DNA of 64,000 nt from Utricularia gibba (taxonomy: Eukaryota; Plantae; Magnoliophyta). Shown here piece after piece: positions 3,392 to 62,633 of the stretch; position 1 is the stretch's first letter; each line of letters begins with the position of its first letter. The stretch lies in NCBI GenBank assembly GCA_002189035.1, contig NEEC01000010.1:2232001-2296000 (forward strand), read 5' to 3'. The notes below the pieces were generated by a model. The model saw only the letters and a list, made by a program, of their open reading frames with translations. It did no database searches and was not told where the DNA came from. The translations under genes were made by a program, and so were the position numbers.

Positions 3392-3527
3392 CCATTCTGG
3401 ATAAGAGTTTTTTTCTTTTGGAGGAGGAAGCCTTGGGACGCGACTATAATTAGCGCCATGGAGGTTCTCATTCATCTGTGCATTGCGATCAAAAGTTCCC
3501 TAAATCTGTGTGAGCGTGTGGAGAAAG

Positions 3528-5558
3528 ATGTCTGGTGAAAAAGGTCATGTGATTGGCATGGATCTTGGAACTACTTACTCCGTCGTCGGCGCTTGGCACA
3601 AGGGTCGCATCGAGATCATCGCGAATCATCAGGACGGTAGCCGGACGACGCCGTCTGCCGTTGCTTTCACCCAAACTGAAAGGCTCATTGGTCAAGCTGC
3701 TCACAATCAGCTGTCCTCAAATCCAACCAACACTGTGTTTGGTGAGTAATACAGATGGTTAGAACTTGCATTCATCAAAGCCCATTTGATTCATTTCTCT
3801 ACCCTACAATCTCCGCTCACAAACAGATGTAAAGAGGCTGATTGGAAGGAAGTTCTCGGATGAGCTTGTTCAGAAAGATATCAAGCTATGGCCCTTCAAG
3901 GTCATCCGAGGAAGCAACGACAGGCCTATGATTGTTGTGAACTACAAGGGTGAGGAAAAGCTGTTTTCGGCGGAGGAGATATCTTCCATGGTGTTGACGA
4001 AGATGAAGGAGACAGCTGAAAAATATCTTGGGTCAGCTGTGAAACAGGCCGTGATCACTGTTCCGGCATACTTCAACGACTCTCAACGCCGTGCAACCAT
4101 AGATGCTGGTACTATTGCCGGCCTAAATGTCATGCGCATCATAAGTGAGCCAACAGCTGCTGCTTTTGCCTACGCCTTGAACCAAAATTCTGCCGAAGAA
4201 AGAAATATTCTGGTTTTTGACCTCGGTGGTGGCACTTTTGATGTCTCTATTCTTACCACCGATGGAGGGGGCACCATGAGGTTAAGGCTGTCGCCGGTGA
4301 TACTCACCTTGGAGGCGAAGACTTCAACAACAGAATGGTTGAGCATTTCGTTGCGGAGTTCATGAGAAAGCACAAAAAAGATATGAGCGGAAATTTCAAG
4401 TCTCTGAGGAAATTGAGGACCGCTTGTGAGAAAGCGAAGAAGGAGTTGTCATCCACAGCTGAAACCCACATGGAGATTGACAATCTGTTCGAGGGTGTTG
4501 ATTTCCACGCACGGTTGACTCGTGCGAAGTTCGAGGAGCTAAACAAGGATTTGTTCAACAAGTGTGTGCAGATAGTAAAAGAGTGTTTGGAGGATGCGAA
4601 GATGGACAAGAAGAGTGTGGATGATGTGGTTCTAGTGGGAGGATCCACCAGGATCCCCAAAGTGAAGCAATTAATGCGGGAATTTTTCAATAGGAAAGAG
4701 CTGTCTAGTGAAGGCATCCACCCTGATGAAGCTGTTGCATATGGTGCTGCTGTTCAGGCTGCCATCTTGAGCGACGAGGCTACTGAGGAGATGAAGGATA
4801 TCGTACTTCTAGATGTCAATCCGCTTTCCCTTGGTTTGGAAACTAAGGACTATTCTATGAGTGTGGTCATTCCAAGGAACACCACTATTCCCACAAAGAA
4901 GGAGGATGTCTTCTGTACAACCGAAGATGATCAAACTGCAGCCAGGTTTTCGATCTATGAAGGTGAGCGCCCAAACACCAAAGACAACAACTTGCTGGGT
5001 CAGTTCAGGATCTCTGGAGTTCCACGGGCTCCAAGAGAGAAAATAAAGTTTGACGTGTGCTTTGAGATCGATTTCAATGGAATTCTGAAGGTATCTGCCG
5101 TGGAAACAACCACCGGCTTGAGGAATCAAATCACAATCACCAACGACAACGAAAGACACTCCAATGCGGAGATCGAAAGGATGATAGAAGAGGCCGAAAG
5201 GTTCAAGCTGGAAGATGAGGAGTTCCGGAAGAGGGCTAAGGCGAGAAACGAATTGGAGACATACGCTTACAAACTGAGAGACGCTCTCATGGAAAATAAG
5301 ATAGTATCTATGCTCCCCGCCGCCACTAGGAAGAAGATCGAGGACGCTGTTACCTCCACCATCGACTGGATCGACGACAACCAACATGCTCTTACGCGAC
5401 AGGAATTCGACTCCAAAAGGGCTGAGCTGGAGGAGCAGATTCTCAAAATATGCAGCCCCATCATGGCCGACAACAAAAGTCGCCTCAAATTGCTCGGACT
5501 CTTGAAACTCTTGATGAGTGGAGCGAGTGTGGCAGCTGCAATCGGAGGATTTTTTTAG
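3528..5558 (+). pseudogene. HSP70: Cytosolic-type HSP70, atypical copy a (exons 3528-3741, 3827-5558); frameshift at about 4276, so either a pseudogene or an assembly error
   Basis: Motifs [49 protein letters not shown]. The phase-1 intron lies in the canonical NTVF/D position. At 4271-4282 it reads GGCACCATGAGG where the paralogue has GGCACCTTTGAGG (net -1). No EEVD. Confidence 0.88.
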
Positions 5559-6029
5559 GGCTTGCGGACCTTTGCTTTTTTTTTTTTTTACTGCATCTTT
5601 TGGAAAAATTTGTGTGTGACACTCACGACGTGATGTCTTTTTGCTTGTGTTTATTTCTGTGTATAGCTTTTTTCCTAATAAACATTAGGAGCGTGTAATG
5701 ATCAAGAGCCACATATTATGTATGACTTGTGGGATTTGTGTAAAAATAAATAAAAAAACAACGTAGTGCCAAGTAATAAATACAACAAGGGAAGGGCAAA
5801 TGATCAATCCGAATAATAAAAATGTAATCTTTATCATAAATTGGATAAACTCAGATCTTGGGTTATCCCCAACATGATTGTTGTATGCATTGATGGCGGC
5901 TTTGACCAGGCCTTCCAATGGGTCACGATGTCTCTTTCTACTTAATCGACCAAAAGGCCACCAGTCAACAAGCATTCAGTAATGGCAACTGGCATGTCAT
6001 CATGTTGTATTGATGCTTGTCCAGACCTT

Positions 6030-6670
6030 ACAAATGGAATAGTGATCTGGTAATTCCTGACGACGCTCTTCTGTCTTCCAAGAATTCCCACAAGGAAGGA
6101 GAAGAGATATGAAACAGGCATAAGCAGCCAAACTGGAATAATGTATTCAGTGTATGAAGGCGAGAGTTCTTATACCAAAGATAACAAACTTGGGTAAATT
6201 CGAACTCAATGCGGTCTCCCCCCTGCACGCAAAGGAAAACTCCAGTGTAGTGTATGTTTTGAAATGGATGAAAACGGTATTCGAAGAATGACTCACAATT
6301 GCGAATGATAAGAGCAGATATGGTGCCAGAAATGATTTGCTGGTGTACGTTGGCAAACTACTAAACGAACTCAGTGATGAGATGGCTTCCAAACTTCCGC
6401 TGCGATCAGAAAGGGGGTTTCGAGATGCTTTTAGACTCCAAACAAAACATGGCTCGACGAGAACCAAGACCCTGGGGTTCATGACTTCAAAAGCAGGGAA
6501 GTGGAGCTTGAGAAGGGCATCATCACACTCATTGATCCTCAAGCTGCAGCCGCCCCTGGTGGTGGTGCTGCATGGTTAGGTTTTTCCAAACGGAGTGAAT
6601 GTGGTTTCTTCGATGCTGCCGAAGGAATGCCATGAAGAAACTAAACAAAGAGATTGAAATGGATGATTGA
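6030..6670 (+). pseudogene. Decayed, divergent third HSP70 fragment (substrate-binding domain and lid only)
   Basis: Across frames it reads IPTRKEKRYETGISSQTGIMYSVYEGESSYTKDNKL / GKFELNAV / PPARKGKLQCSVCFEMDENGI / LTIANDKSR / ARNDLLVYVGKLLNELSDEMASKLP / WLDENQ...ELEK, ending near KEIEMDD*. This is colinear with the HSP70 SBD and lid, with several stops and frameshifts. Confidence 0.8.
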
Positions 6671-7204
6671 TTAGTCGACAGGCTCCTGCTGTGCCACTTC
6701 CCCTGTTCCAAGGATGTCTGTTGCTGCTGCTCAAAGTCTGGTGTGCATGTTGTCTGTGAACATCGTGGTTGCTGTCAGACTACATTATCTTGTTGCTACC
6801 TGCTGCTAAGTCAAAGACTGTTAAGTTTTTGATGAATAAAGGAGCCAGCTTTTTCTTATTGATTCCAAGAACCAACAACAAAGTCTCATAAATGTGCAGA
6901 GATGCACAGTAGTGTTACATGAAAAATAGGATGAATTTTAACATGAAATCGTTTAAGTAAAAAACAATAATAAAAAAGAGGGTTTTGATTTGAAAGAGTA
7001 TGAGAATGAAGAACAAAGTTTATTTTAATAGAATAGATACAAATACAAGCTGTGTACATCAGCTTTTATAAATTCAAAAGTAACAAACTTCACATAAAAT
7101 CAGTATTTAATGAGACCATTTAATGAGATCTCTTTAGGGATGATAATACATATTTTTGAATGATTGAGTGTATAGAAATTACTCATATTGTGTTACAAAA
7201 ATCA

Positions 7205-7365
7205 AATTTTACTTCATAAACTAATGATTTCAGGGATTCATGAGGTGAATTCTAGTGCAATCAATGCGTTGGCAAAGAATTGTCTATCCTGGAAGACCTT
7301 GGACTTATTGACTGCCGCATGATTGATGGAACATCTCTCGGGGATCTATCAACAGCCTAACCAAC
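7205..7365 (+). pseudogene. ARABIDILLO-like F-box/LRR gene fragment
   Basis: LHKLMISGIHEVNSSAINALAKNC / ILEDLGLIDCRMIDGTSLG resembles the ARABIDILLO LRR segment LRLSGIRDVTSEAIEALAKHCPQLNDLGFLDCLNIDEEALG (comparison from memory). It is frameshifted and isolated. Confidence 0.5.
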
Positions 7366-7584
7366 CCGCGAAACCAGGGCTGATTGACTTGCTCACTTCC
7401 AACGGCTGTGTAGCCTTTATTACTCAATCTTATTTCAATATTTTAAGATTATCTTCTAACTTAGCAGAAGCTCGTTCAACACATGAAATGCCCGATTCGA
7501 ACGTGCAGTGGATAGTCTTTAAACGTGTCTCAAACACCCCAAATCGGTCAGCTTTGACTGGTCGAACACTCAGTCTTGACAAGA

Positions 7585-7748
7585 AGCCGCTTCCTCAGCC
7601 GTAGCGAAGGTGCCGAGCCAGCGGCGCGTGCGCTTTCTGGGATCGCGGATCTCCGCCACCCATTTCCCCACAGCTCCTCCGGCGCACCCCTCCGTTCCGG
7701 AATTTCCCATTGTCGGGCCTCCCCTTCCCTTGCATGGCCTCTTGTTGA
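7585..7748 (-). pseudogene. ABI4: Truncated duplicate of ABI4 (basic region and first half of the AP2 domain)
   Basis: Aligns by eye to 1735-1898 with high identity, with compensating -1/+1 indels. It has no ATG and lacks the 3' part of the gene. Confidence 0.9.
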
Positions 7749-8319
7749 CGAGAGGTGAATTCTCTACATTTCATGGGCCATCTATATTAAAAAATTATTT
7801 TTATTAAAATAAAAAAGTTCTATCCCAAGTACTAGGAACGAAATACACCATATAATTTGTTGCCTCTATTCCTAGGGAGTGTTTGGTCTATATGACTAGA
7901 ATGTAAAAATATTATTAATTTATTTGAATTCAAATAAAAATGACGTAAATATATTACTTTTTATATAGTATTTAATGAATAAATAAAAATTTAGATTAGG
8001 TAAAGAAAGAGTGTATAGGTTTAATTAAATAAATATGTCTTTATAGAACTAAATAAAACCTTCATAATCATGAACTTTTTAAACTCGTAAAGTAAATGTA
8101 TCACAACTTATTTTTTTGGGCAATACCACCATTTATATAATATTTTATTAATTATAAAATCATGACTTTAAACGATGGTGAGATGAAATTCAATCCAAAC
8201 TCATTATTTAATGAATTAAATCAAACAACTTTAGATAGAATAAACAAATTATGTGGTATAAAAATAATAGCTTTGGATAAGAATTTTTATTTCTTATGCT
8301 TTCTTTCTTTATTTTAAAT

Positions 8320-9450
8320 ATTTACATTTATTAATTTTTTGTTTCTGATTTCTTATTGGGATTGGCGTTGCACTTCTAGTGTTTGGCCAAGTTCATTCCA
8401 AATTTTAGTTATTAGCGGAACGATATTCCTTCCCAATTAAGAATATGAAAAATAATTAAATCAAAACAACCAATACAATAATTAAACCAATGGATAATTA
8501 ATGCTGGAACCACCCATTGACGTGACCCATTTTATTGACTTGACTTGGGTTGACTTTGACCGGTCCCTCCTATAATGGGCCAAATTACGGACTTGTGCCT
8601 GTCTTGTGGGACAGTTTTTGTTTGATGTAAATATTTTTTGCAATTAAAAATTCAAAAATAAGAAAAAGTCGGCTACAGAGGGAATGAAGAAACATGACTT
8701 TATTTTAGATTTCTTTTTATCCTTTACTGCATGGTTTCAATAGATTGTTTTTTAATTATACATAATTTAACCAACCAACCAAACATATAATCAATATTTA
8801 ATTTCCTATTAAAACCGTCCATATCAATCCAATAAAACACGTCTCAAGCGGTTTTTCCAAACGTAACATTAATATTATATATAGAATCGGGGGGATCTCT
8901 GTGCCCGAATAAGTAGCGATGGATGAGATTGAAGGATTGTATCCAGCTATGGGTGCAACGAGCAATAGACAATGCACCCGAATGAGGGTGATGTCACGAA
9001 ACTTATGAATCCATAATATTTCCGTTTTCATTTCCAAATGTGAAGCATCAAAAAATATATAAAATAATGTATTTCTTTTTTATATTAAATATTACTTCTT
9101 ATGCTTTCAATCTTTATTCTAAACATTTACATTTAATCAAAATATATATTAGTATTTGGTTTCTGATTTCCCATTGGGGATGACCAAGTTCGTTCCTAAT
9201 TTTAGGTATTTGTGGAACGATCGATATTCCTTCGCAATTAAGAATATGGAAAATCATTAAACCAAAAAACCGAGTCAACAAGCAATTGAACAACACCGTG
9301 GTCGGCGGATATGTCCAAGGGACGGGACCCACCTAATGACTTGACTGAGTTAACAAACACTGGCCCAAATTACATGTGCGTGAAGTTTGTCTGCAATTAA
9401 AAATACCAAAATAAGTAAAAGTCTGTCAGAGGGCCCACGAACGAATGGTC
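8320..9450. repeat. Two further diverged copies of the HSP70 promoter block, one with four W-boxes at 8535-8561
   Basis: 8341-8440 and 9160-9250 match about 3010-3130; 8535-8682 and 9335-9440 match about 3198-3340. Confidence 0.75.
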
Positions 9451-10182
9451 TCATCCAGGAAGTTTCGTATATGTAATCAACTAACACAAATTACTTTATT
9501 TAAATTAATTGAAAAACAATTTTATTCACTAATGTTTATGAACACTTGTTAATTATTATATTTATTATATTTTAAATTAATTGGTAAATGTATTATATAT
9601 TTATATAATTCAAATTTAAATATCAAAATTTTGTATTAATAAATTTGTGATAAAAATATTTTGATAAATAAAAAATTATATGTTAATTTAAAAAATAAAA
9701 ATATAGCAATTGCTTCAATAATTATTATGTTATTATTATAATTTTTATTTTATTGTTAAAGTTTAGTATCATTCAATATAAATAATCACATACTTGTATA
9801 ATATATAATTATTGTAAATAATTAAATATTTTTATAAATTCATTTTATTGTATGAATTTTTTTTCCACTCGATTATCAATACAAATTAATAGTTCCTTTA
9901 TTTAAATTTATTAAATTTATTAAAAATTATTCATAAATCGATTAAAAACACTAAAAAAACTTATTTTAATATAACATATTAATCTCATTTATATTCGCTT
10001 ATTAAATTATTTAAACATGAATTTTATTTACTTTTATTTATTTATAATATTCAAACGAATATAAATAATGTTAATCGAATCAAACACAATACTAATTATT
10101 TAACATTGTTATTTAAGTTATAACATCCCTTATCATCTAGAACTTACCCCAAACACAATCAAGTCTAGTCCACCATTCCGGA

Positions 10183-10679
10183 TAGGAATGGCAGCGGGGC
10201 GGATATGGGGCAGGTAAACTCTTACCCGATACCCGCTCCACCGAAACGCCCCACCGCTACCTGCCCCGCCTGCTTGTTTCATCCATTTACCCGCCCCGCT
10301 GCCTGCCCCCACTACCCACCCGGCTGCCATTCCTAGATCTTGCAAGAACTAAGAGGGGCAAAATGGACATTTTCCTTGATGTCATTATGATGGCTGAAAC
10401 ACAAGTATTGACAAAAAAAAAATCAAATAGAGTAAAAATTGACATTTTTCTATATCTTAGCTATCTTCTTCTTAGTTCAGACTACTCAACACAAATATTT
10501 ACAAGGAAAAGAACAAAAAAAAACATGGTAAACCCTACGAATAAACAAAGAAAATTATTGTAATTTTTTATCCGCTACCTGCCTTGCTACCCGCTACCTG
10601 CGGACCTGACTCTCACAGGTACTGAACAGGTCAGATATCTGACGGGTTGCCGGTCGGATTATCCATTTTGCCATCCCTA
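10183..10679. mobile_element. hAT-type MITE (497 bp) in the HSP70b promoter
   Basis: TIRs TAGGAATGGCA...TGCCATCCCTA. The 8-bp TSDs ATTCCGGA (10175-10182) and ATTCTCGA (10680-10687) each differ by one base from the empty site ATTCTGGA in the paralogous promoter (3394-3401). Confidence 0.85.
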
Positions 10680-10845
10680 ATTCTCGATATATAAATTTAG
10701 GAGTTTTTTTTTTTTTTTTTTGTTCTTTTGAACGAGTAAGACTTGGGACAACTATAATTAGCGCCATGGGCCTTTCTCATTCTTCTGTGGTGCACTGCAA
10801 ATGCAATCAAAAGTTCCCTGAATCTGTGTGAGCATGTGGAGAAAG

Positions 10846-12874
10846 ATGCCTGGCGAAGCAGGTCATGCGATTGGCATCGACCTTGGAACTACTTACTCCG
10901 TCGTCGGCGCTTGGCACCAGGGTGGCATCGAGATCATCGCCAATGATCACGGCAGCCGGACGACGCCGTCTGCTGTTGCTTTCACCCAAACTGAAAGGCT
11001 CATTGGTCAAGCTGCTCACAATCAGCTGTCTTCAAATCCAACCAACACCGTGTTTGGTGAGTAATACAGATGGTCTGAACTTGAATTCATCGAAAACCAT
11101 TTGATTCATTTCTCTACCCTGCAATCTCCTCTCACAAACAGATGTTAAGAGGCTGATTGGAAGGAAGTTCTCGGATGAGCTTGTTCAGAAAGATATCAAG
11201 CTATGGCCCTTCAAGGTCATCCGAGGAAGCAACGACAGGCCTATGATTGTTGTGAACTACAAGGGTGAGGAAAAGCTGTTTTCGGCGGAGGAGATATCTT
11301 CCATGGTGTTGACGAAGATGAAGGAGACAGCTGAAAAATATCTTGGGTCAGCTGTGAAACAGGCCGTGATCACTGTTCCGGCATACTTCAACGACTCTCA
11401 ACGCCGTGCAACCATAGATGCTGGTACTATTGCCGGCCTAAATGTCATGCGCATCATAAGTGAGCCAACAGCTGCTGCTTTTGCCTACGCCTTGAACCAA
11501 AATTCTGCCGAAGAAAGAAATATTCTGGTTTTTGATCTCGGTGGTGGCACTTTCGATGTCTCTATTCTTACCACCGATGGAGGGGGCACCTTTGAGGTTA
11601 AGGCTGTCGCCGGTGATACTCACCTTGGAGGTGAAGATTTTAACAACAGAATGGTTGACCATTTCGTGGCGGCGTTCATGAGAAATCACAAAAAAGATAT
11701 GAGCGGAGATTTCAGGTCTCTGAGGAAATTGAGGACCGCTTGTGAGAAAGCGAAGAGGGAGTTGTCATTCACAGCTGAAACCCACATGGAGATTGACAAT
11801 CTGTTCGAGGGTGTTGATTTCTACACACGGTTGACTCGTGCGAAGTTCGAGGAGCTAAACAAGGATTTGTTCAACAAGTGTGTGCAGATAGTGAAAGAGT
11901 GTTTGGAGGATGCGAAGATGGACAAGAAGAGTGTGGATGATGTGGTTCTAGTGGGAGGATCCACCAGGATCCCCAAAGTGAAGCAATTAATGGAGGAATT
12001 TTTCAATAGGAAAGAGCTCTGTAGTAAAGGCATTCACCCTGATGAAGCTGTTGCATATGGTGCTGCTGTTCAGGCTGCCATCTTGAGTGGCGAGGCTACT
12101 AAGAAGATTAAGGATATCGTACTTCTAGACGTCACTCCGCTTTCCCTTGGTGTGGACACCGTGGACTGTTACATGAGTGTGGTGATTCCAAGGAACACCA
12201 CTATTCCCACCAAGAAGGAGCGTGCATACTGTACAAGCAAAGATGACCAAACTACAGTCAACTTTTCGATCTATGAAGGTGAGCGCGCAAACACCAAACA
12301 CAACAACTTGCTGGGTGAATTCACGCTCTTTGGAATTCCTCCGGCTCCAAGTGAGAAAATAAAGTTTAAGGTCTGCTTTGAGATCGATTTTAATGGAATT
12401 CTCAAGGTATCTGCCGTGGAAACAACCACCGGCTTGAGGAATCAAATCACAATCACCAACGACAACGGAAGGCGCTCCGAGGCGGAGATCGAAAGGATGA
12501 TAGAAGAGGCCGAAAGGTTCAAGCTGGAAGATGAGGAGTTCCGGAAGAGGGCAACTGCGAAAAACGATTTGGAGACATACGCTTACAAACTAAGAGACGC
12601 TCTCCTGGAAAATGAGATAGTAGCCATGCTCCCCGCCGCCACTAGGAAGAAGATCGAGGATGCTGTTACCTCCACCATCAACTGGATCGACGACAACCAG
12701 CATGCTCGTACGCGACAGGAATTCGACTCCAAAAAGGCTGAGCTTAAGGAGCAGATTCTCAAAATATGCAGCCCCATCATGGCCGACAACAAAAGTCGCC
12801 TCAAATTGCTCGAACTCTTGAACCTCTTGATGAGGGGAGCAAGTGTGGCAGCTGCGGTCGCAGGATTTTTTTAG
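10846..12874 (+). CDS. HSP70: Cytosolic-type HSP70, atypical copy b, intact, about 647 aa (exons 10846-11056, 11142-12874)
   Basis: Spliced length is 1944 nt and in frame, with all NBD motifs and the interdomain linker DIVLLDV. It ends ...[26 protein letters not shown] with no EEVD. An alternative in-frame ATG is at 10834. Confidence 0.93.
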
Positions 12875-13291
12875 GGCTTGCAGACTCTTTTTTTTACTGC
12901 ATCTTTTGGAAAAAAATTGTTTGCATGTGTTTATTTCTGTGTATATCTTTTTTCCTAATAAACATTAGAAGCGTGTAATGAACACGTGCCACATCAATTT
13001 TCGTGCATCTTTTGTATTTTGGGACTTGGGGGATTTGTGTAAAAATAAATAAAAAAAACAACGTAGTGCCAGGGAATAAATACAACAAGGGAAGGGCCAA
13101 TGGTCAATCCTGTTGTATATCAATGCTTGGCCAGACACCATCCATGAAGTTTCTTTGTATTTACTCGCTCATTCACATATGACAAGGTATAAACCATGAT
13201 CATAAAAACCAGCTTTATAAACACACAAACAGGTCATTTCCGAATATGGAGTTAGTGAAGCACCAGCAACGCTGCTTCTCTTTGCTGGTAA

Positions 13292-14657
13292 TTACAGGTA
13301 CCTGACCAGAAAATATATAACCGTGGCTAAAATGACAATACCGATGACTGAGAGGAGCAGGGATAAGCAGGAGCAGCCGCTCTTTGCTCGATTGTTTAAT
13401 ACTGCAAGCCTTTTCTGCACTCGCTGTTACAATGCCAGAAATAGTTGGGAAGAAGGGAGTCAGTTGGTCGAACAGAATGGAGATAAATTTATGAAACAAT
13501 GCATTTTGTAGTTAGAGACTTCTAGTCTAAGCATGAAGATATGTATGTTCTGAAACAGGAGATAAGTCGAACGACATGGAAAGGTTTGGCAGAAATGAAC
13601 GATGAGATTTAACTGCATGGATTCCCACACACCACCCTTGGTGTATGGTGCGAAAAAAATTGGGAACCCACTGCTTTGAGGCTGGAGTTGCACTTATACA
13701 CGAATGATAACTGGCACGTTAAAGCTTAGGATCATAGAAATTTCAAAAGGAGTTAATCTGCATACAAGTTCCAGCTTGGAAAAAGTTTTCGATCACGTGA
13801 ACACAAAAAGCGTTTTCTATAGGGAGAAAAGTAACCTGCAGTCTTGAGTCAGTGACATCAACATGTTCATCCAGATTTTCCTGCATCACACGATATATAA
13901 TTCATGGATACAACAAATTCAAAATTTCTAGGAAATATAAACATCAGAAAAGCATTCATACGATCAATCTGGTGTGTAGATCAAGCTCTTCATTCACGGC
14001 TAGAGCGATGTGTTTTGTGCTTATGACTGTCTCCTCTAATTTATCAAGATCCTCATCTTGTTCTGAAGAAACAACAATGAACTGTCAAGACGACAACAAA
14101 GGGCGGCAAAATGCAGAGGAGGTTGGAGATAAAACTAGCCTCTCATGATTTGCCTTTGGAGAACGACAATTCCCTGGTTGTCAAGATCCTGTGTTCTAGT
14201 AACAGCATCAATTGGTTTTACTTCTGGGCCAAGCAATCCATCTCGGTCTCCAAAACTGGACATGTTTAACATGGATGCCATCTGGTTTACCTTTGATCTC
14301 AAGTTATTCATCATGTCCTTGCGACGGTTCATTTCCCTCACCGTACTGTTAGTTAGAGCATTTACAGGTTATAAATTCAAATGAGAGAAGGTGCAACATT
14401 GTAGAGATAGATGACTTCCTCAAGAATCGGGATTCTTACATAGACTGCTTTCCTGGAAGCTTGGACAAGAGCACATCTAGGCCATCAAGCTTGGTTCCTA
14501 GTATAGTTATTTTCCTCCTCATTGCGGAAGAATGCCTCTGTGCTTCTGGGCCCATCACTTGCAACGTACTTTTATCACTTATCATACTGCTGATATCATC
14601 TGCAAGTTTGACTGCCTCATTGTACTCCCTCACCCATGAGTCGGACGAAGCTGCCAT
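13292..14657 (-). CDS. SYP51: Syntaxin SYP5 family Qc-SNARE, 233 aa (exons 14657-14440, 14345-14140, 14062-13962, 13880-13836, 13423-13292)
   Basis: MAASSDSWVREYNEAVKLADDI, SNARE core QIMREQDEDLDKLEETVISTKHIALAVNEELDLHTRLI, and a C-terminal TM. The exons sum to 702 nt. Intron 2 has a GC donor. SYP51 versus SYP52 cannot be resolved. Confidence 0.92.
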
Positions 14658-29045: not shown

Positions 29046-34694
<5,649 letters not shown>

Positions 34695-43539: not shown

Positions 43540-44670
43540 TCAGTTCCCCATTGATCTAAGCTCTTTCAACTGCTCTCTAATCTGATCCTGCACCAGTTCA
43601 AGCCGCTTAGAGAAGACTTCCAACTCCAGAATCTGCTGCTTTCTCCACCGTTCATCAGCCGTTTTATCTGGAACAGTTCCCGGATAACACAAGGATATGG
43701 GGCTACCGGGGCCGAATGCGTGGCCGCAGCACAAGCCGCTGGAAAAAGCATTTGATCCTGTCAAACTGGGAAGCAACTCCTTCAGTATTGGGGATAGGCA
43801 ACTCTTGACAGTCTCTTCGATCACATTCGACATGGGCCCAGAAAACCCCATGTTCAGAACGGGTGCTGCAATCGGCGTTGCCATCGCAGGCGGCGTTTGT
43901 AAGATGTTGATGTTACTGTATCCTGAGTTGTGCAGCGGCGGTTTTTCCTCTGATTTCATGGACCCAGAAAGATTCCTCTTTCTGGAAGCAGGTGATTTGT
44001 TGTTGACCTCAACGCCTCCTGGAACGGTCCTCTGAAAAGCAAAGAAGTTTGGGTTGTTGAGATCGTCGTCATCGTCCTCTAGGGCGGCACCTCGGAAAGC
44101 AGCAGAACCGTTGGCGTTGACGGCGGCGTTGCCCCATATTTTGGAGGAAATTTCGAAGGTGGCCTGATCGTGGGGGCTCTTAAAGATGTAGTCTTTTCCG
44201 GAGCTGAATCTGGTGACTAGGTTACGATACTTCTTCTTCAGCCTCCGTAGCTTCTCAACAAGTTGATTCTTGTTGAAATCGAACTGCAATTTTGTCTTGA
44301 TTTGGTCGTAAAACGAGGACGTATCATGATACTGCTGCGAGGAGCCACGGCGAGTGGTATAGTCCAGAAACCCTTGCAAAAGCTCGATTTCGTCCTCATC
44401 CGTCCACAGGCGCTGGAATAGCTTCCGAGACTCATCCCCCGGTACCGGCCTCTTAGAGTCCGTCACATGGTGCTGCAGATGGAGATCGGGGACCGCGATA
44501 GTCACCTGGGAGATGGAGAGAGGAGCCCGATCAAGTGCAGCGGCGGCGGCGGCGGCAGCAGCAGCAGCGGAGGAGGAGGAATCGTCCTCGTCATGATCCG
44601 TAAGGTCGTCCTCGTCGTCAAGGAGGCCGTTGAAGATGACGGAGGAGGGTTCGGCGGCAGCGGCGGCCAT
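43540..44670 (-). CDS. GeBP/STOREKEEPER (DUF573) transcription factor, At3g04930-like, intronless, 376 aa
   Basis: FQRLWTDEDEIELLQGFLDY, FDFNKNQLVEKLRRLKKKY, and a C-terminal WRKQQILELEVFSKRLELVQ. Confidence 0.92.
   Translation of the reverse strand: MAAAAAEPSSVIFNGLLDDEDDLTDHDEDDSSSSAAAAAAAAAAALDRAPLSISQVTIAVPDLHLQHHVTDSKRPVPGDESRKLFQRLWTDEDEIELLQGFLDYTTRRGSSQQYHDTSSFYDQIKTKLQFDFNKNQLVEKLRRLKKKYRNLVTRFSSGKDYIFKSPHDQATFEISSKIWGNAAVNANGSAAFRGAALEDDDDDLNNPNFFAFQRTVPGGVEVNNKSPASRKRNLSGSMKSEEKPPLHNSGYSNINILQTPPAMATPIAAPVLNMGFSGPMSNVIEETVKSCLSPILKELLPSLTGSNAFSSGLCCGHAFGPGSPISLCYPGTVPDKTADERWRKQQILELEVFSKRLELVQDQIREQLKELRSMGN
44538..44580. repeat. Compound (GCG)n(GCA)n(GGA)n microsatellite encoding a poly-Ala/Ser tract
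   Basis: GCGGCGGCGGCGGCGGCAGCAGCAGCAGCGGAGGAGGAGGA, read directly. Confidence 0.8.
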
Positions 44671-45837: not shown

Positions 45838-47222
45838 ATGAAGATGAAGAAAGCATCTGTTCCTTGTTCGAATACGCCGAGTTATATGAAGCCCACTTCC
45901 AGTTTTGAGGCGAAAAGGAAACTTTCACCCGATTCAGGTACGAAATCGATGAGTAAATTGCGTAGAACCAGCAGCTTGGAGAAGACGGGCGGTTTGATTA
46001 CGAATCGCAGTCGTGACTTGGATGTCAAAAGGGCAACGTGCTCATCAACGCTGAAACATCGAAAATTTCCACCTTTTCTGAGTTTGAATCCAGGAGGAAG
46101 AGAGTCTGAAGGAGTTTCTACTGTTAAAGTTTGCCCTTATGTCTATTGTTCTTTGAATGGGCATTATCATGCTTCCTTGACGGCTTTAAAGCGCTTCATA
46201 TCAGCAAAAAGGAAAATGATCAAGGCCCAAAAGTGTTCAAAACCAGTTGATCTGGTAGAAGAAATCATTGCAGAGTTTCAACCATTTGAATTGAATTCTG
46301 AGGCCTCTGAGCTGGAAGAGTCAGCAATGACCATTATCGATGAGCCCTGCTTTGATTGTTGCGCAGATGATGAAAGGAAACTTGAACCGGGAGTCAGACA
46401 TGTCGATGAGCATTTCAAAAAGAAGGATGTGTTTACTGTTTGTGTACAGGAAATCAAACAGAAGTCAGAAGAGGGAAATTCATTTGCTCCATTGAGATCA
46501 GATTTGATTGATGAAGATACAAAGAACAGAGTGGAAATGCCACCAGAGCCAGCAGAAACTCATCTGGAGTTCGCGCTGAAGTCATCTGAACAAGAAATCA
46601 ATGGAGAGTATCAGTCATTTGAATCAGATTCTGAGGCTTCTGTGTCGGAGCAGTCATCAGGATTGGAATCATGCAAAGATGAAGAAGCTGACAACAGGGA
46701 GCTCATACCCAAGTCAGGGATGAATGTGTCGGATCAAACGAGCTTTTCCACAATCGGAAGCATGCAATTTCAAGTCAAGACAGCTCTCCAGCACCTGCTG
46801 ATAACCATGTGGAAGAAACAACTCTGCATTCCAAGAAGCATATTTCATCCCTACAAGAGCGTCATCTTCAGGGAGACTTGGTTGATGAAGATCATGACAC
46901 CGTAAAGGCACCAGCTCCAAGAAAATGCGATGATACAGGTGAATCCAGACACTTCAATCCTAAAGAACCAAACTTCCTCCCATCCGAGCCCGACAAAGAA
47001 GCAGAGAAGGTCGATCTGAAACATCAGGAGCTTGACGACAGGCGAAACTCAGAAGAGTGGATGGTCGATTACGCTCTCAGGCAAGTGGTTACCAAGCTCC
47101 GCCCCGCTCGCCGCAGGAAAGTAGCCCTCCTTGTCGAAGCATTTGAAAAAGTGATGCCAACGAAAAGCTTCAACCACCCTCCTCCCCTCCAGAACTCAAC
47201 TCCAATCCAACCTTGCAGGTGA
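45838..47222 (+). CDS. Plant calmodulin-binding protein (PICBP-like, CaM_binding domain); apparent -1 frameshift at about 46697-46720
   Basis: PSYMKPTSS, RATCSSTLK and KVCPYVYCSLNGH at the N-terminus; FNPKEPNFL...EKVDLKHQ...EEWMVDYALRQVV...KVALLVEAFEKV at the C-terminus. The two ORFs are offset by one base. Confidence 0.87.
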
Positions 47223-50941: not shown

Positions 50942-51555
50942 CTTCACGGATCCGAATCTGAATATCGCCGCAGAGAAAGTGGGGGGAGTTAAGGAAGAAT
51001 TGGGAAGTCAAGCGGTTACGCTACGCAACGCGAGTCTTGTGCCTTCGAAATTTGCCGTTTCGATGGAAATTTGAATCGCCTCTTTTCCGTTGCCCCTGAC
51101 TTTTTTTAATATCCAGAAATTTAGCAAAATACCTGACTTTGTCACTTATTACCAAAATATCCGAATTTTGTAAAGATATTTGTAAAAATATGGATAAAAA
51201 GTGTAGTTTTTAATAATAATTTTCTTGTATTCGATAAAACAGTAAATTAGGATATTATTTAGGGTTTAGATTTGGCACATTATGGGAATAAATAAAAATG
51301 AATAGTAATATTATTAAGGTAAATATATTTTAAAAATTAAAAACGCCGTACAATCTCCAAAATCATTTCGATCCTGTTGTGAATTCACTCCTCCCATTTT
51401 CACCGGTCCAAAATTCTCGATCAATCTCGAGGCGTTCGTCACCAGCAGCAGCAGCAGCACCGTATCACAATCGGCGGCGATATTGCTCAGATCTCCGTCG
51501 ATCAGGTTGCCGCAGGAGTTTCCTGGAGGAATCCTCATTTATTGCACAAACAAAG

Positions 51556-54500
51556 ATGGCTACTTCGGGGAACCCTAACGTACTTGGAGGGGGCAGCCCA
51601 TTCGATGTGCAGAATTTGTTCAGGCCTTCGACGCCGCCCCAGCCGCAGCCACTCACCTCTATTGCCTCCTCCAACCCTAATCCCCAAAATTTCATGGTTA
51701 ATGTAAGTAACCCCACAGATTTTGCTTCTGCTCATTTCCCGCCGCCTTCAACGTCTTATCCTCCGACGTCTGGAGGCGCCGGTGAAGGTGGCGTGTACCC
51801 TTTCCCACCTCAAGCTGCGGGCTTTGGTTACCATCCAGTGTATACCGCTTATTCTAATCCTCCGACGCCACAGAACCACCCGGAATTCGCGCCACCACAG
51901 AGGTCTTTGTCTTATCCTACTCCAACGCTGCAGCCCCAAGTGCAATCCACGGTGTCACCACTGCACGCCAATTTTCAGAGTCCCACGGTTCATTCGAATA
52001 ATCACGGGGCTCGATTGATGGCGTTGTTGAGTGCGCCGGCTACTGCTCTTGATGTCCAGCAGCAGCTCACGATGCCCATGCCTTCCAATTCTTCTTCAGT
52101 GCCAGATTCATCGCAGCCTCTGAATGCAGATAGCATGCCTTCTGCGATTGTGGGTTCACATCAGAATCTTGTGATGCGAATGCCAAGCAATAAGATACCG
52201 AAGGGGAGGCATTTGTTCGGCGATCATTTGGTGTATGATATCGATGTTAGGTTGCCAGGGGAGGCGCAGCCGCAGCTCGAAGTTACCCCTATTACTAAAT
52301 ATGGTTCAGATCCAGGACTTGTTCTAGGCCGCCAGGTTGCGATCAGCAAGAAATATATATGCTATGGGCTTAAGGGGGGTGCTATTCGTGTCCTTAACAC
52401 CACCACGGCGTTGAGATCGTTGCTCAAGGGCCTAAATAAGGTTTGCATCCCTCTACCCGCAATTTGTCTCCTAGAATTTCCCTAAATTACTTGTTTTCCT
52501 TTTTAAAACATTTTTGATTGTTATTCATTTTCACTCCTGGAGTTCCCCTCGTATAGTGTGGCAAGGAAATTTTAATTAGGCAATGAGAAGTTCTTGCTAT
52601 GCCTATTTAATTAAATGTTTTTGTACCCCACGCATATAAATTTTTCAGAGAGTCACAGACATGGCCTTCTTTGCTGAAGATGTTGACATTTTGGCCAGGT
52701 TACTGTCTTCCGTTTTCGTATCCTTGTGTTGATTTTTTTACTGTTGCACTAATGCTATCGGTTATTTTCACTCAGTGCTAGTGTAGATGGGCGTATTTAT
52801 GTGTGGAAGATTACTGAAGGCCCAGATGAAGAAGATAAACCTCAAATTTTTGGAAGGACAGTTATTGCCATTCATGTTACTGGACAAGGAGAAAATGCTC
52901 ACCCAAGAGTTTGCTGGCACTGCCATAAACAAGTAAACCACTTTAGTGATGCTGTATAATTATTGTAATTATCACGAAAGGCTAGATTTCTTTTCCTTCT
53001 TTTTTGGCTGAGCATATATGTATTTAGATTGTATTTTCAATTGCTGGTTTTTTTGACAGGAATTTCTGGTGGTGGGCATTGGAAAGCATGTTCTTAAGAT
53101 CGACACTACAAAAGTTGGAAAGGGTGAGAAGTTCTCATCAGATCAACCACTTCATTGTCCCATTCGGAAGTTGATTGATGGAGTTCAGCTCGTTGGTACA
53201 CATGATGGAGAAGTAACTGGCCTGTCAATGTGCCAGTGGATGACCACACGTTTGGTATCCGCTTCTATGGATGGCACAGTATGTTCTTAGTATATTATGT
53301 TTTATTTTTATTTTTTTCATGATGCATTATTCAATATCTTCACATGTATCCTGTGGATTGGTAGCTTCATTCTTTCAAATCTGGTGGATCTTTACAAATT
53401 AAAATTTCTAAAGCAAGTCTAGCAATCCCCATCGTTAAATCACTTTTTCCGTTGATCCAACTCTCCATTAATTTTGAAAATTATTAGCATATGCTACTTA
53501 GAAATTGAAAGTTAAGTGGATTCCCTCTTTCATAGACGGTTGTGGTGTTGCTGATAATTGCAAAAAATCTTTTTTTTTTTTAAACTTTCAACCTGTACAA
53601 ATTTTGTACCCGTCTAGAAATTTATTGGATTTGCAATTTACGGTCGTGCTGTTGCAGATAAAGATATGGGAAGACCGAAAGTCTCAACCAATTGCAGTTC
53701 TTCGGCCGCATGACGGACATCCTGTTAATTCTGCCACATTTTTAGCTGCACCTCCCCGCCCAGATCATATCATACTCATTACTGGGGTATTTGATGTTTA
53801 TAATATTTTATTTCTGTATGTGATGGTGATAAATGCTTGATTTGTGTTGTGTAGTGCCGGATGGTACAATGATCCTGCTGAAGATGTTATTTGGGTGGTT
53901 TGTGTGTGATTTGGCATCACGTGTTATACTGCTTACAATATTTTTTCAGGGCCCAATGAACCGTGAGTTGAAAATCTGGGTTCCAGCAAGTGAGGAGGGT
54001 TGGTTACTTTCAAGTGATGCAGAGTCGTGGCGCTGTATACAGACATTAGAACTGAAGACATCAGAAGCTCTGGCGGAAGAAGCTTTCTTCAATCAAGTGA
54101 TGGCATTGCCACAAGCTAGCCTTCTTTTACTGGTAAACGCAAAGAGGAATGCAATATATGCTGTGCACTTGGAGTATGGTCTATACCCAGCAGAATCGTG
54201 TATGGATTACATTGCAGAGTTTACTGTAACAATGCCGATACTGAGTTTCACAGGAACAAGTCAATTATTGCCTCATGGTGAACAAGAAGTTCGGTTATAT
54301 TGTGTCCAGACCCAGGCTATTCAGTACTATGTATTGGACTTGTCACAGTGTCTGCCACCTCCATCGGCAAATGTGTGCGAGAGGTTGGACTCCAGTGCCA
54401 ATCTTGATGCTTCTAGTTCCAAGGCTTTTGTGGATGTGGAGGCTTTCTCCAGTGTACCAGATATTTCCATTTCAAGCATGCCTCCCAAGTCAGCCATCAG

Positions 54501-57277
54501 CGACAGCATCTCAGAGAGCTCAACCGCAATCAAATTCTCTACCAGTCCTGCATCATCTCAATTGGCTGGACCACAGGAGTTCTCAACAGTTGTGGAAACA
54601 AATTTACTTGATGGGCTTCAGATGCCAGAAAATGCCTTATCCGGTCTGGGAATCAGAGTCAGTGAAGGTCCTCCATTATGTGAGAACATTTCAGAGCCAA
54701 AGATCGTGGAGTATTCTGTAGACAGGAAAATGGATATCCTATCTAGGAACGCTTCTGATGCTGCTTCATTTGACAGTGTACCAAGGAGTGATGACAGCCG
54801 ACATTCTCAAGATGATTCTGTGCCCCTTGGGCAGCAGGCTAAGTTCAAACACCCAACGCATTTGGTGACCCCCTCTGAAATATTAATGGCCAATTCAGCA
54901 TCTGAAATTAGCAAAACTAATGAGTCAAGAAATGATCTTGAACTGAATGTTCAAGATGTAGGAATTAGCAATGATGCGAGGAGTGTTGAAGTGGAGGTAA
55001 AAGTGGTGGATGATGCTGGGATTCAACATGAACATCAAACTGTTTTGGATAACAATGAAAATTCCTTTTGCTCTCAAGCATCTAATATAGGTATTGAAAT
55101 GCCTCGAGAGTGTCGTGAACTTCTACCAGAAGCATATGTTGTGCGTGAAGCTCAGCAGGCTAAGGATACTTGTATGACTGAGGTTTTCTCTGAACCATCT
55201 GCAGTGGAAGAAGTCCGTGGCACTTCTGATAAAGCTTCTAGAGAATTCGTTGATTCGCAAGACCCTCTGACGGCACAACCTTCATCAAGTCAGAAAAGGA
55301 AAAAGAAGGGAAAGAATGTTCAGACATCTGGGTCAGTTTCACAAATGTCAAATGCCGTCAATTCAACAGAACCATCTAATGAACCACTTATTGGCTCTAG
55401 CACAAGTATGGAAGCTGCATTTGCACAATTAATGTCCATGCAGGAGATGCTGAATCAGGTGATTGATTACCTGGCCATGATCACCCTGATTGCAATGAAT
55501 TCTGTTATTTTTTTTTTCTTGTGAATGGGTTCTTGATGTATGAGATTCAAAAATCTCATGAGTCTTCTATCCTTTGTTTTTTTTTTAGGTTGTTACACTG
55601 CAAAAAGATATGCAGAAGCAGTTGGGTACGCTGATTACTGCTCCCATTACAAGGGAAGGAAAGCGCCTGGAGGTATCTATCGGAAGAAGTATGGAGGATG
55701 CATTTAAGGCTCATGCTGATGCTTTATGGGCACGTTTCCATGATGAGAGTGCAAGGCAGGAAAAGGAATTAAAGGATCGTGTGCAACAGTTGACCAACGT
55801 GGTCAGTAGTTGTTTGAACAAAGAATTGCCTTCAGTTATTGATAAAACTGTCAAGAAAGAACTGAGTTCTTTGGGGCAATCCTTGGCACGCACTATTACT
55901 CCCGTCATCGAGAAAGCAGTATCTTCTTCTATTGTTGAGAATTTCCAGGTTGAATATAATTTTGCTTTTTCAATAGGGATAAACGTATCCTTTGCGGTGT
56001 CTTTATGAAAATATTTTGTGAATGTAAGCAGAAAGGTGTAGGCGATAAAGCAGTAAATCAACTGGAGAAATCTGTGAGCACTAAGCTGGAAGGGACAGTT
56101 GCTAGGCACATCCAAACTCAGTTCCAGACTTCTGGCAAGCAAGCTCTTCAGGTATTACTGCATCCAAGATCTTTATGTATTACTGGATCAAAGCTTACGT
56201 TCTCTTGATGAATATGGTGGTTTATGCAGGACTCTATGAAATCTAGTTTTGAAGCTTTAGTGATCCCTGCTTTTGAAATGTCCTGTCGGACAATGCTTGA
56301 GCAGCTGGATTCTGCACTCCAAAAGGGGATGAAGGAACACACTACTACTGTGCAGCACCAGCTGGAAGCAACACATTCGCCATTAGCTATTGCTCTAAAG
56401 GCATGAATTTGTTTAGTCATCATATGCTTTCCCCTCGATGGTTTTGCGAATCCCATCTAGTGTTTTTGTTTTTGATTTTCAGGATGCTATAAGTTCTGCA
56501 TCATCGATGACTCAAACGTTGGGCGGTGAGATTCTCGATGGGCAAAGAAAATTGCTAGCTCTTGCAGTTTCAGGCGCTAATTCGAAGGCAGCGACGGCCG
56601 GTCTGGTTGGCCAACTCAACAATGGTCCTTTGGGTGCTATTCATGACAAGGTTTATACCGCACTTCCCTTCCAGATAATGTCTTTGTAGGTGTCTTCTTT
56701 TTCCTGAGACCCCTCACATGTTTGATATCTCAAGCTGGAGGTCCCCGTTGATCCTACAAAAGAGCTTTTCCGACTGATCAGCGAGCGCAAATACGAGGAA
56801 GCTTTCACTTCTGCTCTCCACAGGAGTGACGTCAGCATCGTCTCCTGGCTGTGCTCCCAGGTGCTCTGCTCTCTCCCTCACCATCTTTTCAAAAAAACTC
56901 TGCATACCAAATCCTCCCCTCCCCCCTGGTAGGTAGATTTCATCTTGTGCTAAACTCTCCCCCCGCAGGTGGACCTGGCGGCAATCCTGTCGCTGAGCCC
57001 TCTCCCACTGAGCCAAGGGGTGCTTCTGTCTCTGGTGCAGCAGCTCGCCTGCGACATCAACAACGACACCCCCAGGAAACTAACGTGGATGAGGGAAGTG
57101 CTGTCGGCAGTGAACCCCGTGGATCCGATGATCGTGATGCACGTACGGCCGATCTTCGAGCAGGTGTATCAGATACTGAACCACCAGCGCAGTCTGCCGA
57201 CCATGGCGGGCTCCGAACTCTCCAACATCCGGTTGATTATGCACGTTCTCAACTCCATGTTGATGGCCTCCAAATGA
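51556..57277 (+). CDS. VCS: VARICOSE / enhancer of mRNA-decapping 4 (EDC4), about 12 exons
   Basis: Pro-rich N-terminus, [26 protein letters not shown]40 region, [14 protein letters not shown], and a C-terminal [17 protein letters not shown]...KLTWM. The intron at 56401 has a GC donor. Confidence 0.95.
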
Positions 57278-60226: not shown

Positions 60227-62633
60227 TATTCTTCTTCTTTCATCGTTGGCCCCATCGTCATCTTCTTCTTCTTGATCTTCCAAATCAATGGTTAGACGGA
60301 GTTGGTAATTTCCTGATCTCCGTTGCTGCTTCAGTATCCACTTCGCTCTCTCAACAACATCGTTGTGACAATCAGTCAATTGAATTTCTGTCAAAGTGTC
60401 GATATTTTTCAAACCTCGTGGGATCTCATGCAAACCCCACACCTCAAGAATCTCTAGCTGGGGAAGTGAATATCCGACCCCTTTCGCCAGTACTCGCACA
60501 ACTCCCTGATTTCCAAATATTTCAATCTGCGAAATCCACCTTCAATCGGCGTCCACACACGACCAAAATATTTACTACTGTCGTTATACACCACCAGCGC
60601 TTCAAGATTAGGCAACGCCCCAAATCCATTCACTTGGCTGCAACTGATACGGCACTCACTCAAACGCAGCACTTTCAGTGACTCCGGGAAACTAAGATGC
60701 TCAATACCCCGCGCATTAACCAAATTTAGAGTCTCTAATTGTGAGGGGAGTGCCACATTCTTTGAATCTCTTGAGTCACAGAGAGTTAGATGCTTCACAC
60801 TCGGCATTGTATCAGCCATCTCTCTCGTAAACTCATCAGATTCAAGTTCACGAAGGCGCTCAAAAACAGTGGGGAGTTTCCTTTCATTCACAGGAAAGCT
60901 ATTGGTACACAGCACCAGTGATGAAAGCTGCGGCCAGCTCCATATTTCAGAAACTAGCTGGCGAAAGATGACAGCTCCATAATTCCCGCGGCCGAGTGAG
61001 TGCATCATCGAATTTCTGCATGTTCCATAACGCAGAACCAAGTGAAGAAGCCTCCTCGCTCTTATCAGATTTTCTGCAGCTTCCACATAACTGGCAATCA
61101 CGCACAAGATAACATGATCCTTTCGAATTCAGGGTGCACTTGGTGCACCTACCCACCAGATCAGAAAACAGTTTTCTGGTGCTGATCTCTTTCAAGCAAA
61201 GATCCCGTAAAAGATCGTGTATCCCCAGATTCATGATTTGCCCAATCTCATCCCAGATCGAATAAAAATCAAGTTTGTATGAATAAGCTCGATCGTGTAC
61301 TCCAATGCAGCCTCTTCGATTCGTTTGCCTTGTATTGGTCTCACAAGTGCAAAGGCAACCAGTGCATTAATCAAATCAGACAACCCAATGAGCGTCTTCT
61401 TTATAGAATCCTCCGATGTACAGAAACAGGGGCTTGAGGCGAAGAGGCAAGTAGTCGTAACTCAAGCTCAGAGCCCTTCTGCTGTATTCATTGTCTTCCA
61501 AGTTAACCAAAGACGCCACATCTTTCGAAACGCTGCTCCAGTACTCACATGTCTTGTCCGACCTGGAGAGCAACCCAGCAATGGTGGTGATTGCAAGAGG
61601 GTGCCCTCTGCAATTTTCCACTATTTCCTTTCCATAGGCCTCGAGCTCAGTAGGGCAGCACATGCTGCCGAACACTCGATCACAAAACAATTCCCAGCTT
61701 TTTTCTGGATCAAGAAAGTCGACATTGTAAGCCTTGGATGATCCTAAACCAGCAGCAAGTTGCCAGTCTCTTGTCGTCACGATAACTCGACTTCCCTGGT
61801 TATCGTCGGGAAGATATTGTCTCAAAGCCTCCCATGCTTTCAGATCCCACATATCATCCAACACAATCAAATACCTGAAACCTTTTAAACTTTGATACAG
61901 ATCGGTTCCCAAATCCCTAATGCTGTCACAACCTAAGCCTCCCAGAATACCTTGGAGTATTCGCAGCAAATCGTATTCTTGTGATACCGTAACCCAATAG
62001 CTCCGTTCAAATCGCCGTTGGATGAGGCGATCCTCGTAAACCAGCCGAGCTAAAGTTGTTTTTCCGATCCCTCCCATCCCAACGATGGGAATCACCTCAC
62101 GGCTTTTTACGTGACTAGCAATCAGCTCATCCTTATCCAAGAGAGGTGGCTTTCGAATCCGACCACTTTTGGCCGACAATTTTCGGTAAATGAGGTTGAG
62201 CGATTTGATTTCAGAGATCGTTGGCTTACCGGGGTGGATTCCAAATTACACCCAGCAGTAGTTACCTTGCAGCTTAACGACTCTAGATCTCGAATAACTT
62301 TATCATATCCTCAGTGGAAGCCGCAGACGGCCATTCATCGCCTTCATCCGTAACATCCTCCGCTCTGAGAATTTGATTCACCAAGTACCTGTCTAGAACC
62401 TCAGATGCCGCAATGACTGAATCACGAATGTCAAGGGCGATTTGCTCCATCCGTGGATCATCCGGTCCCCGCGGGAGACTTTCGAGAAATTCCAGGAAAT
62501 AAAGAGCCTGCCCTTCCAACTCCTCTATCCGCTCCGGATCTATAGAATTAAGCTTGTACTTGTAGCGAAGCTTCAAGGTTTCCAGAAGCTGCAAGAGGGT
62601 GAGCAGGGGAATGTAGGCCGAAACAGCAGCCAT
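60227..62633 (-). pseudogene. CC-NB-LRR resistance gene (R1B-like), disrupted by the retroelement and about 6 frameshifts
   Basis: CC with an EDVID-like EVLD, P-loop GMGGIGKTT, kinase-2 YLIVLDDMW, RNBS-B GSRVIVTTR, GHPLAI (GLPL), LSLSYDYLP, GIHDLLRDLC (MHD), then LRRs (EIWSWPQL, FGALPNLEAL, GGFRRLKYL). It is spread over at least 6 frames. Confidence 0.88.

Follow-up and report, generated by a model that had tools for sequence, protein, structure and literature searches.

Truncated T1-type HSP70 genes with an orphan hydrophobic tail in Utricularia gibba

Background

The closest described relatives of the genes considered here are the 'truncated' cytosolic Hsp70s of plants, which were defined by their lack of the C-terminal EEVD motif in a survey of 192 plant and algal genomes (Chen et al. 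2023; PMC10687569). The present analysis concerns a stretch of 64,000 nucleotides of Utricularia gibba DNA (GenBank assembly GCA_002189035.1, contig NEEC01000010.1, positions 2,232,001 to 2,296,000 of the forward strand; hereafter 'the window', in which positions are counted from its first letter), where two HSP70 genes in tandem, copy a and copy b, likewise lack EEVD and end in a hydrophobic tail of about 30 residues. The locus is a small cluster of fast-evolving, EEVD-less plant HSP70 genes of the described truncated T1 kind.

Truncated Hsp70s of two lineages, T1 and T2, are relevant to the comparison. The T1 lineage was found in about 60% of the species surveyed, and its mean similarity to full-length cytosolic Hsp70 is about 69%, compared with about 49% for T2; T1 genes keep the intron at the 'DAKR' position, while T2 genes are without it (PMC10687569). 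Canonical plant cytosolic Hsp70s, on the other hand, are more than 85% similar among plants (PMC10687569). The T1 lineage is polyphyletic and expands independently into tandem clusters, including those of the Lamiales genera Salvia, Dorcoceras, and Striga, and its genes are barely expressed where they have been examined, that is, in Arabidopsis, sunflower, peanut, and Litsea (PMC10687569). In the Lauraceae, the T1 proteins of Type IV have a conserved Leu-rich α-helix in a C-terminal extension, for which a role in protein-protein interaction was suggested (PMC10687569). Neither Utricularia nor Genlisea appears in the tables of the survey (PMC10687569).

Gene structure and relation to known plant Hsp70s

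The two genes lie on the forward strand and have a like structure, as established from the listing of open reading frames (ORFs), direct reading, and splice-aware reconstruction. Copy a occupies positions 3528–5558 and copy b positions 10846–12874. Exon 1 of copy a (3528–3741), which runs from the Met codon to the first base of an Asp codon, and exon 1 of copy b (10846–11056) are each followed by an 85-nt phase 1 intron with GT..AG ends (3742–3826 in copy a and 11057–11141 in copy b). In both copies the intron falls within the Asp codon of NTVF-D|VKRLIGR, which is the DAKR position of plant cytosolic Hsp70s. A preliminary description of this locus had recognized a pair of HSP70s with the cytosolic-clade intron position, and this is borne out.

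Together with exon 1, exon 2 of copy b (11142–12874) encodes an intact HSP70 of 647 amino acids. The exon matches Pfam PF00012 (HSP70) over profile positions 65–597 with an E value of 9.2e-191 (635 bits), above the gathering score, and most of it (11180–12871) is covered by perfectly matching contigs in one public sequencing run (X1; see below). Exon 2 of copy a (3827–5558) contains a 1-nt deletion, described below, and its part past the resulting frameshift matches PF00012 with an E value of 3.2e-107.

A TATA-like sequence, CTATAATTAG, is read 5' of copy a (3444–3453) and is conserved 5' of copy b as CTATAATTAG (10752–10761). An AATAAA lies about 85 nt past the copy b stop (12957–12962) and is conserved in the 3' flank of copy a. 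A search of the 1 kb upstream of each copy found no three-unit heat-shock element. A poly-T run is present at about 10702–10721, just 5' of the copy b promoter, and the spacer between the two copies is strongly AT-rich (GC 0.26 at 8001–10000).

The pair is extremely diverged. The best 120 database matches of copy b are only 62–66% identical to it, over 95% of the query; nearly all of them are canonical HSC70s, and 107 end in EEVD. Among 82 canonical sequences, 443 alignment columns were defined as near-invariant; 121 of these (27%) are changed in copy b and 127 in copy a. In a maximum-likelihood tree the a-b pair is placed on a long branch among the cytosolic Hsp70s, with its position unresolved, and the stem of the pair measures 3.09 substitutions per site, versus at most 0.18 for every canonical branch.

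The domain order, catalytic motifs, linker, intron position, and length (647 amino acids in copy b versus about 650) of copies a and b are those of the canonical EEVD-ending HSC70/HSP70 proteins. They differ from the latter, however, in having no Gly-rich region or EEVD, in the changes at 27% of the near-invariant positions, and in a remodelled substrate pocket. Assignment to the canonical cytosolic class is ruled out by the missing EEVD, the identity of 62–66%, and the 121 changed columns of the 443. Assignment to T2 is likewise ruled out: AtHsp70T2 is intronless, is without the α part of the substrate-binding domain (SBD-α), and is about 49% similar, whereas copies a and b have the intron, a full lid, and about 65% identity.

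The features found are instead those of the T1 class (cyHsp70T-T1; AtHsp70T1/HSP70-18 type). Like T1, copies a and b are EEVD-less, keep the DAKR intron, and have about two-thirds identity (62–66%) to full-length proteins; the nucleotide-binding domain (NBD) and SBD-β are kept, and the variation is concentrated at the C-terminus, where the C-terminal domain is altered. Tandem clustering through independent lineage-specific expansions is also shared, as, apparently, is weak expression. They differ from other T1 proteins in that the lid (SBD-α) is present in full and an orphan hydrophobic tail of 30 residues takes the place of the C-terminal domain, which in Type I is simply deleted. Other T1-like matches end right after NPIIA, which is the boundary where the tail of copies a and b starts. 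The Lauraceae Type IV proteins (Group B) are similarly EEVD-less T1 proteins with a C-terminal Leu-rich helix, but their SBD-α is atypical and they have been reported only in Laurales. Because the tail search detected no sequence similarity between the tail of copies a and b and that of Type IV, the likeness appears to be convergent.

The preliminary description had put the locus forward as its best candidate for an undescribed system. This is not supported, since EEVD-less tandem cytosolic Hsp70s have been described and T1 is present in about 60% of plant genomes (PMC10687569). The locus belongs to the described T1 class, and its one distinctive trait is the orphan hydrophobic tail that replaces the C-terminal domain.

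Conserved and altered motifs of copy b

The phosphate-1, phosphate-2, EPTAAA, and linker (DIVLLDV) motifs, listed earlier as intact, are indeed present in both copies. Copy b keeps IDLGTTYS, FDVKRLIGR with the catalytic Lys, EPTAAA, CEKAKRELS with the adenosine contacts, GGSTRIPK, and the linker DIVLLDV. Because the catalytic and nucleotide motifs are retained, an ATP-binding and ATP-hydrolysing NBD is plausible for copy b. A pair of working ATPases is not supported, since copy a is frameshifted.

Other conserved positions have changed. ATKDAG has become ATIDAG and NEPTAAA has become SEPTAAA in copy b; these changes match the positions of K155 and N170 of DnaK, which we take to be part of interdomain coupling. 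In the substrate-binding loop L1,2 the canonical ETAGGVMT is replaced by DTVDCYMS, and in loop L3,4 the canonical STYSDNQPGVLIQVYEGER is replaced by a different stretch of 19 residues. Judged from these loops, the client recognition of copy b is probably altered.

Absence of EEVD

The absence of EEVD is confirmed beyond the alternative frame inspected earlier. Copies a and b both end in GFF, and no codon string for EEVD (GAR-GAR-GTN-GAY) occurs on either strand of the 64-kb window. Alignment of the tail DNA, read in its other two frames, to 61 canonical tails brought out no significant remnant of such a tail; the best score of copy b (29) is at the 95th percentile of shuffled sequences and that of copy a is 18, and derivation of the tail from a frameshifted canonical Gly-rich/EEVD tail was therefore dropped as unsupported. 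A downstream spliced exon that restores EEVD is not indicated either: in addition to the lack of any EEVD string in the window, the contigs of four public runs show no joint leading out of the gene at its 3' end. Without EEVD, the proteins have no access to HOP or CHIP by way of the EEVD-TPR clamp. The proposed uncoupling from HOP and CHIP is supported to this extent, namely for the EEVD-dependent route, and it has already been proposed for T1.

The C-terminal tail

The same tail of about 30 residues was noted earlier in both copies, and this is correct. It is rich in Leu and Ala, follows CSPIMA after the last lid helix, and terminates at homologous stops (5558 and 12874). In each copy, 30 amino acids plus the stop (5466–5558 in copy a and 12782–12874 in copy b) stand in place of the Gly-rich domain and EEVD.

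When the last 60 residues were compared exhaustively by HMMER with 1.84 billion representative proteins, only two matches resulted (P0241 and P0242), both of which are unrelated repeat proteins and were rejected as chance matches; the search of the tail by itself, which had been recommended, therefore yields no homologue. A word-index protein search gave no match to the last 72 residues, though its length filter would hide short fragments. No relative carrying the lid and the tail was found in a scan of JGI metagenomes, and the score of a feature search of the ESM Atlas with the tail (0.84) is at noise level. By these searches the tail is an orphan.

The hydrophobicity of the tail was judged by simple scales only. 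The best 19-residue Kyte-Doolittle mean is 1.61 in copy b and 1.78 in copy a, both of which are borderline with respect to the classical cut-off of 1.6. Hessa apparent insertion energies, simply summed, come to +3.9 kcal/mol in copy b and +2.7 kcal/mol in copy a, and the longest stretch free of charges has 12 residues in copy b and 16 in copy a. Glu628, Asn631, and Arg635 of copy b fall inside the would-be membrane span. On the other hand, a tail segment of 11 residues has a hydrophobic moment of 0.64 at a mean hydrophobicity of 0.13, which is an amphipathic pattern. An AlphaFold2 model of the SBD, lid, and tail has a mean pLDDT of 62 and gives the tail as two short helices with pLDDT values of 43–61. 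On the basis of sequence and model, we read the tail as a Leu-rich amphipathic helix with a short hydrophobic end rich in Ala and Gly, which could make peripheral or protein-protein contacts.

The tail resembles that of tail-anchored membrane proteins in having a C-terminal hydrophobic segment and no signal peptide. It differs from them in that the segment is short, is interrupted by charges in copy b, has a positive insertion energy, and is not followed by luminal residues. About 17–22 uncharged residues are needed to cross the bilayer, and with uncharged runs of 12 (copy b) and 16 (copy a) the classification of copy b as a tail-anchored protein was rejected. Therefore, of the two properties that the preliminary description wished to see predicted, amphipathicity is found and a transmembrane span is not by these simple scales, and the tail of the intact copy b is not a credible bilayer-spanning anchor.

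Copy a, the relic, and divergence between the copies

Copy a was earlier taken to be as intact as copy b, which is not the case in this assembly. It has one base fewer than copy b at 4275–4277 (11591 in copy b), at codon 221 in the numbering of copy b, where copy b reads ACC TTT GAG and copy a reads ACC AT GAG. The frameshift lies 10 residues past the phosphate-2 motif, and the shifted frame stays open through the same tail to the stop. Since contigs end at the points where the two copies become identical, none of the public-run contigs inspected crosses 11591 of copy b in its a form. Exon 1 of copy a is 87% identical to residues 1–70 of copy b (tblastn) and has a 3-nt in-frame insertion, AGG, at 3631–3633; copy a also has the change R276K at the position of the adenine-stacking Arg. 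Copy a, a young duplicate (dS about 0.10) with a frameshift, is probably a pseudogene.

A third copy survives as a relic of 74 codons of SBD-β with an in-frame stop at 6072–6293 on the forward strand, 0.5 kb downstream of copy a. It was identified by tblastn and translation and is 42–44% identical both to copy b and to canonical HSC70. This fragment is an older dead HSP70 copy. A possible faint lid match follows it at 6450–6512. The cluster therefore comprises an intact and probably live gene, a recently broken one, and an old fragment.

The segment duplicated between copies a and b begins about 90 nt 5' of the ATG, so as to include the TATA-like sequence, and ends about 250 nt beyond the stop, with 3' flank homology reaching about 5810 and about 13110, respectively. 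The two copies can be told apart at 123 sites, and the identity along the segment is uneven. It is 100% over about 400 nt in the first half of the NBD (3834–4233 in copy a and 11149–11548 in copy b), 82–94% in the flanks of this tract, and 82–86% over the SBD-β core. The identical tract probably reflects recent gene conversion.

Ratios of nonsynonymous to synonymous substitution (dN/dS) between the two copies were estimated by the method of Nei and Gojobori. For the whole gene dN/dS is 0.50 and dS is 0.10. The ratio is 0.21 in the first 248 codons (N-terminal NBD), 0.93 in codons 250–385 (second half of the NBD), 0.69 in SBD-β, and 0.47 in the lid. SBD-β (residues 386–510 of copy b; 12083–12457) is the region most diverged between the copies, with 28 of its 125 residues different. 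In the tail the ratio is 0.72, and 5 of 31 codons are changed (E/G, N/K, R/S, V/I, and A/G). These values are compatible with neutral drift of one copy and constraint on the other; for the tail they demonstrate no constraint.

Transcript and contig evidence

The public runs consist of assembled contigs only, which give no reading of expression level, transcript ends, or strand. In run X11, one contig joins 11055 to 11141, so that the 85-nt intron is exactly removed, with GT..AG ends. Because the intron is removed in this contig, some family member at least 90% alike is transcribed. The variants in run X11 are partly of the a type and partly neither a nor b; either the run comes from another accession or further paralogues are present.

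Run X1, which is guessed to be RNA, contains perfect copy b contigs over 11180–12871 and one contig with 10 differences, which is the number of a-b differences in the same interval. Run X2, which is DNA-like, contains contigs with 12, 15, and 7 differences, each being exactly the a-b count. Copy a therefore exists in independent data. Over 10600–13400, runs X10 and X11 together contain dozens of contigs that are 90–99% alike, including variants that are neither a nor b, and the organism under the same label therefore holds further alleles or paralogues of the divergent HSP70.

Possible explanations of the cluster

The explanation we prefer, at a probability of roughly 0.7, is a birth-and-death cluster of T1 type in which copy b is intact and functional with a soluble or peripheral tail helix, copy a is a pseudogene, and the fragment is dead. 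Under this explanation a compact Lamiales genome would carry at this locus a small group of T1-type truncated cytosolic HSP70 genes specific to its lineage. Copy b would be an intact and probably functional Hsp70 of 647 amino acids that has kept the NBD with its catalytic residues, the hydrophobic linker, and the full helical lid. It would cycle ATP with J-proteins like other Hsp70s, its heavily remodelled substrate-binding loops and pocket would give it a changed client specificity, and it would be unable to pass clients to HOP/Hsp90 or CHIP via the EEVD-TPR clamp. Its tail would most likely be an amphipathic Leu-rich helix, soluble or peripherally associating, in contact with other proteins or with itself, rather than an anchor that spans the bilayer. 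From the preservation of the 647-codon frame and the catalytic motifs through about 35% amino acid divergence, we infer long-term selection in the line leading to copy b.

Several observations weigh against this explanation. The changes at conserved allosteric positions (ATIDAG and SEPTAAA) and the remodelled binding pocket of copy b would also suit decay, and the dN/dS values of 0.5–0.9 over most of the gene suit decay equally. The evidence for expression of copy b comes from run X1, whose RNA nature is a guess, and the spliced contig of run X11 belongs to a variant at least 90% alike. No tail-bearing relative outside the a-b pair was found in the protein and metagenome searches, and confidence in the structure model is low (pLDDT 62 overall and 43–61 in the tail).

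An alternative is that neither copy is functional and that the locus is decaying T1-type debris, with the tail a neutral product of deletion or read-through into former non-coding DNA. The frameshift of copy a, the stop in the third copy, the changes at 27% of the near-invariant positions, and the dN/dS (0.5 for the gene as a whole, 0.93 for codons in the second half of the NBD) agree with such decay, as do the lack of a heat-shock element in the 1 kb upstream of each copy and the very low expression of T1 genes in Arabidopsis, sunflower, peanut, and Litsea (PMC10687569). Debris would not be expected, however, to keep 647 codons in frame together with all catalytic motifs over a very long divergence from canonical HSC70, nor a dN/dS of 0.21 in the N-terminal NBD, and both the spliced family contig in run X11 and the b-identical contigs in run X1 speak for a live gene. 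Moreover, the pairwise dN/dS of 0.5 permits constraint on copy b if copy a has been neutral since the duplication. Decay of both copies is accordingly considered unlikely.

The reading offered earlier, in which a working Hsp70 ATPase is uncoupled from HOP and CHIP and tethered to a membrane or lipid droplet by a tail-anchor-like tail, appears very unlikely. No window of the protein is more hydrophobic than its last 19–21 residues (Kyte-Doolittle means of 1.61 in copy b and 1.78 in copy a), there is no N-terminal signal sequence, AlphaFold2 predicts the tail to be helical, and the hydrophobic moment of 0.64 in the 11-residue segment is of the kind found in surface-seeking helices. An uncharged run of at most 12 residues in copy b, with Glu628, Asn631, and Arg635 within the candidate span, and positive summed Hessa energies (+3.9 and +2.7 kcal/mol) argue against it, however, as do the differences between the two tails at 5 of 30 residues, which include charge changes and give no sign of constraint (dN/dS 0.72), and the lack of a homologous tail in any other protein searched. 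With 12 uncharged residues, a Kyte-Doolittle mean of 1.61, and an insertion energy of +3.9 kcal/mol, the tether is not supported for copy b; a membrane-tethered chaperone would have to be argued from borderline hydrophobicity alone and appears unsupported. By the same token, little credence can be given to the orphan tail as a newly evolved device for targeting to membranes or lipid droplets, whether as an in-plane amphipathic helix or as a weak tail anchor. If that were true, it would mean a locally tethered, EEVD-less chaperone with altered client specificity in one lineage of carnivorous plants. The motif bound by Hsp70 has basic residues on either side of a Leu-rich core, the model peptide NRLLLTG being an example. 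The Leu-rich, basic-flanked tail resembles this motif and directly follows the lid, and it might be a built-in pseudo-substrate that occupies the groove of its own or a neighbouring molecule and causes autoinhibition or oligomerisation. A protein-protein role has also been proposed for the Leu-rich C-terminal helix of Lauraceae T1 Type IV (PMC10687569). The pocket and arch residues of copy b are strongly altered, though, which makes canonical peptide binding doubtful, and the structure model places the tail without confidence; a pseudo-substrate function is thus improbable.

As it stands, the locus is an ordinary case of birth-and-death evolution within a gene class already known. A functional copy b would be a T1-type Hsp70 that has gained a new hydrophobic helix, beyond merely losing its C-terminal domain, and it could help explain the role of the widespread and uncharacterised T1 Hsp70s.

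Other features of the window

The window is compact and gene-dense, with short introns. Three long ORFs on the forward strand, at 45838–46902 (355 amino acids), 51379–52482 (368 amino acids), and 53833–55521 (563 amino acids), have no Pfam match at E ≤ 0.001. An ORF with an AP2 domain is found on the reverse strand at 1186–1836, a receptor-kinase-like ORF with a malectin domain on the forward strand at 32182–33147, and a fragment of an NB-ARC resistance gene on the reverse strand at 61376–62179; all three are of ordinary plant types. The GeBP gene described next places the genome in Lamiales, though in no family that is well annotated. An intronless gene for a transcription factor of the GeBP family (PF04504, E 2e-33) occupies 43543–44670 on the reverse strand; its best matches are from the Lamiales genera Sesamum, Handroanthus, Paulownia, Rehmannia, Perilla, and Salvia, with only 57–64% identity.

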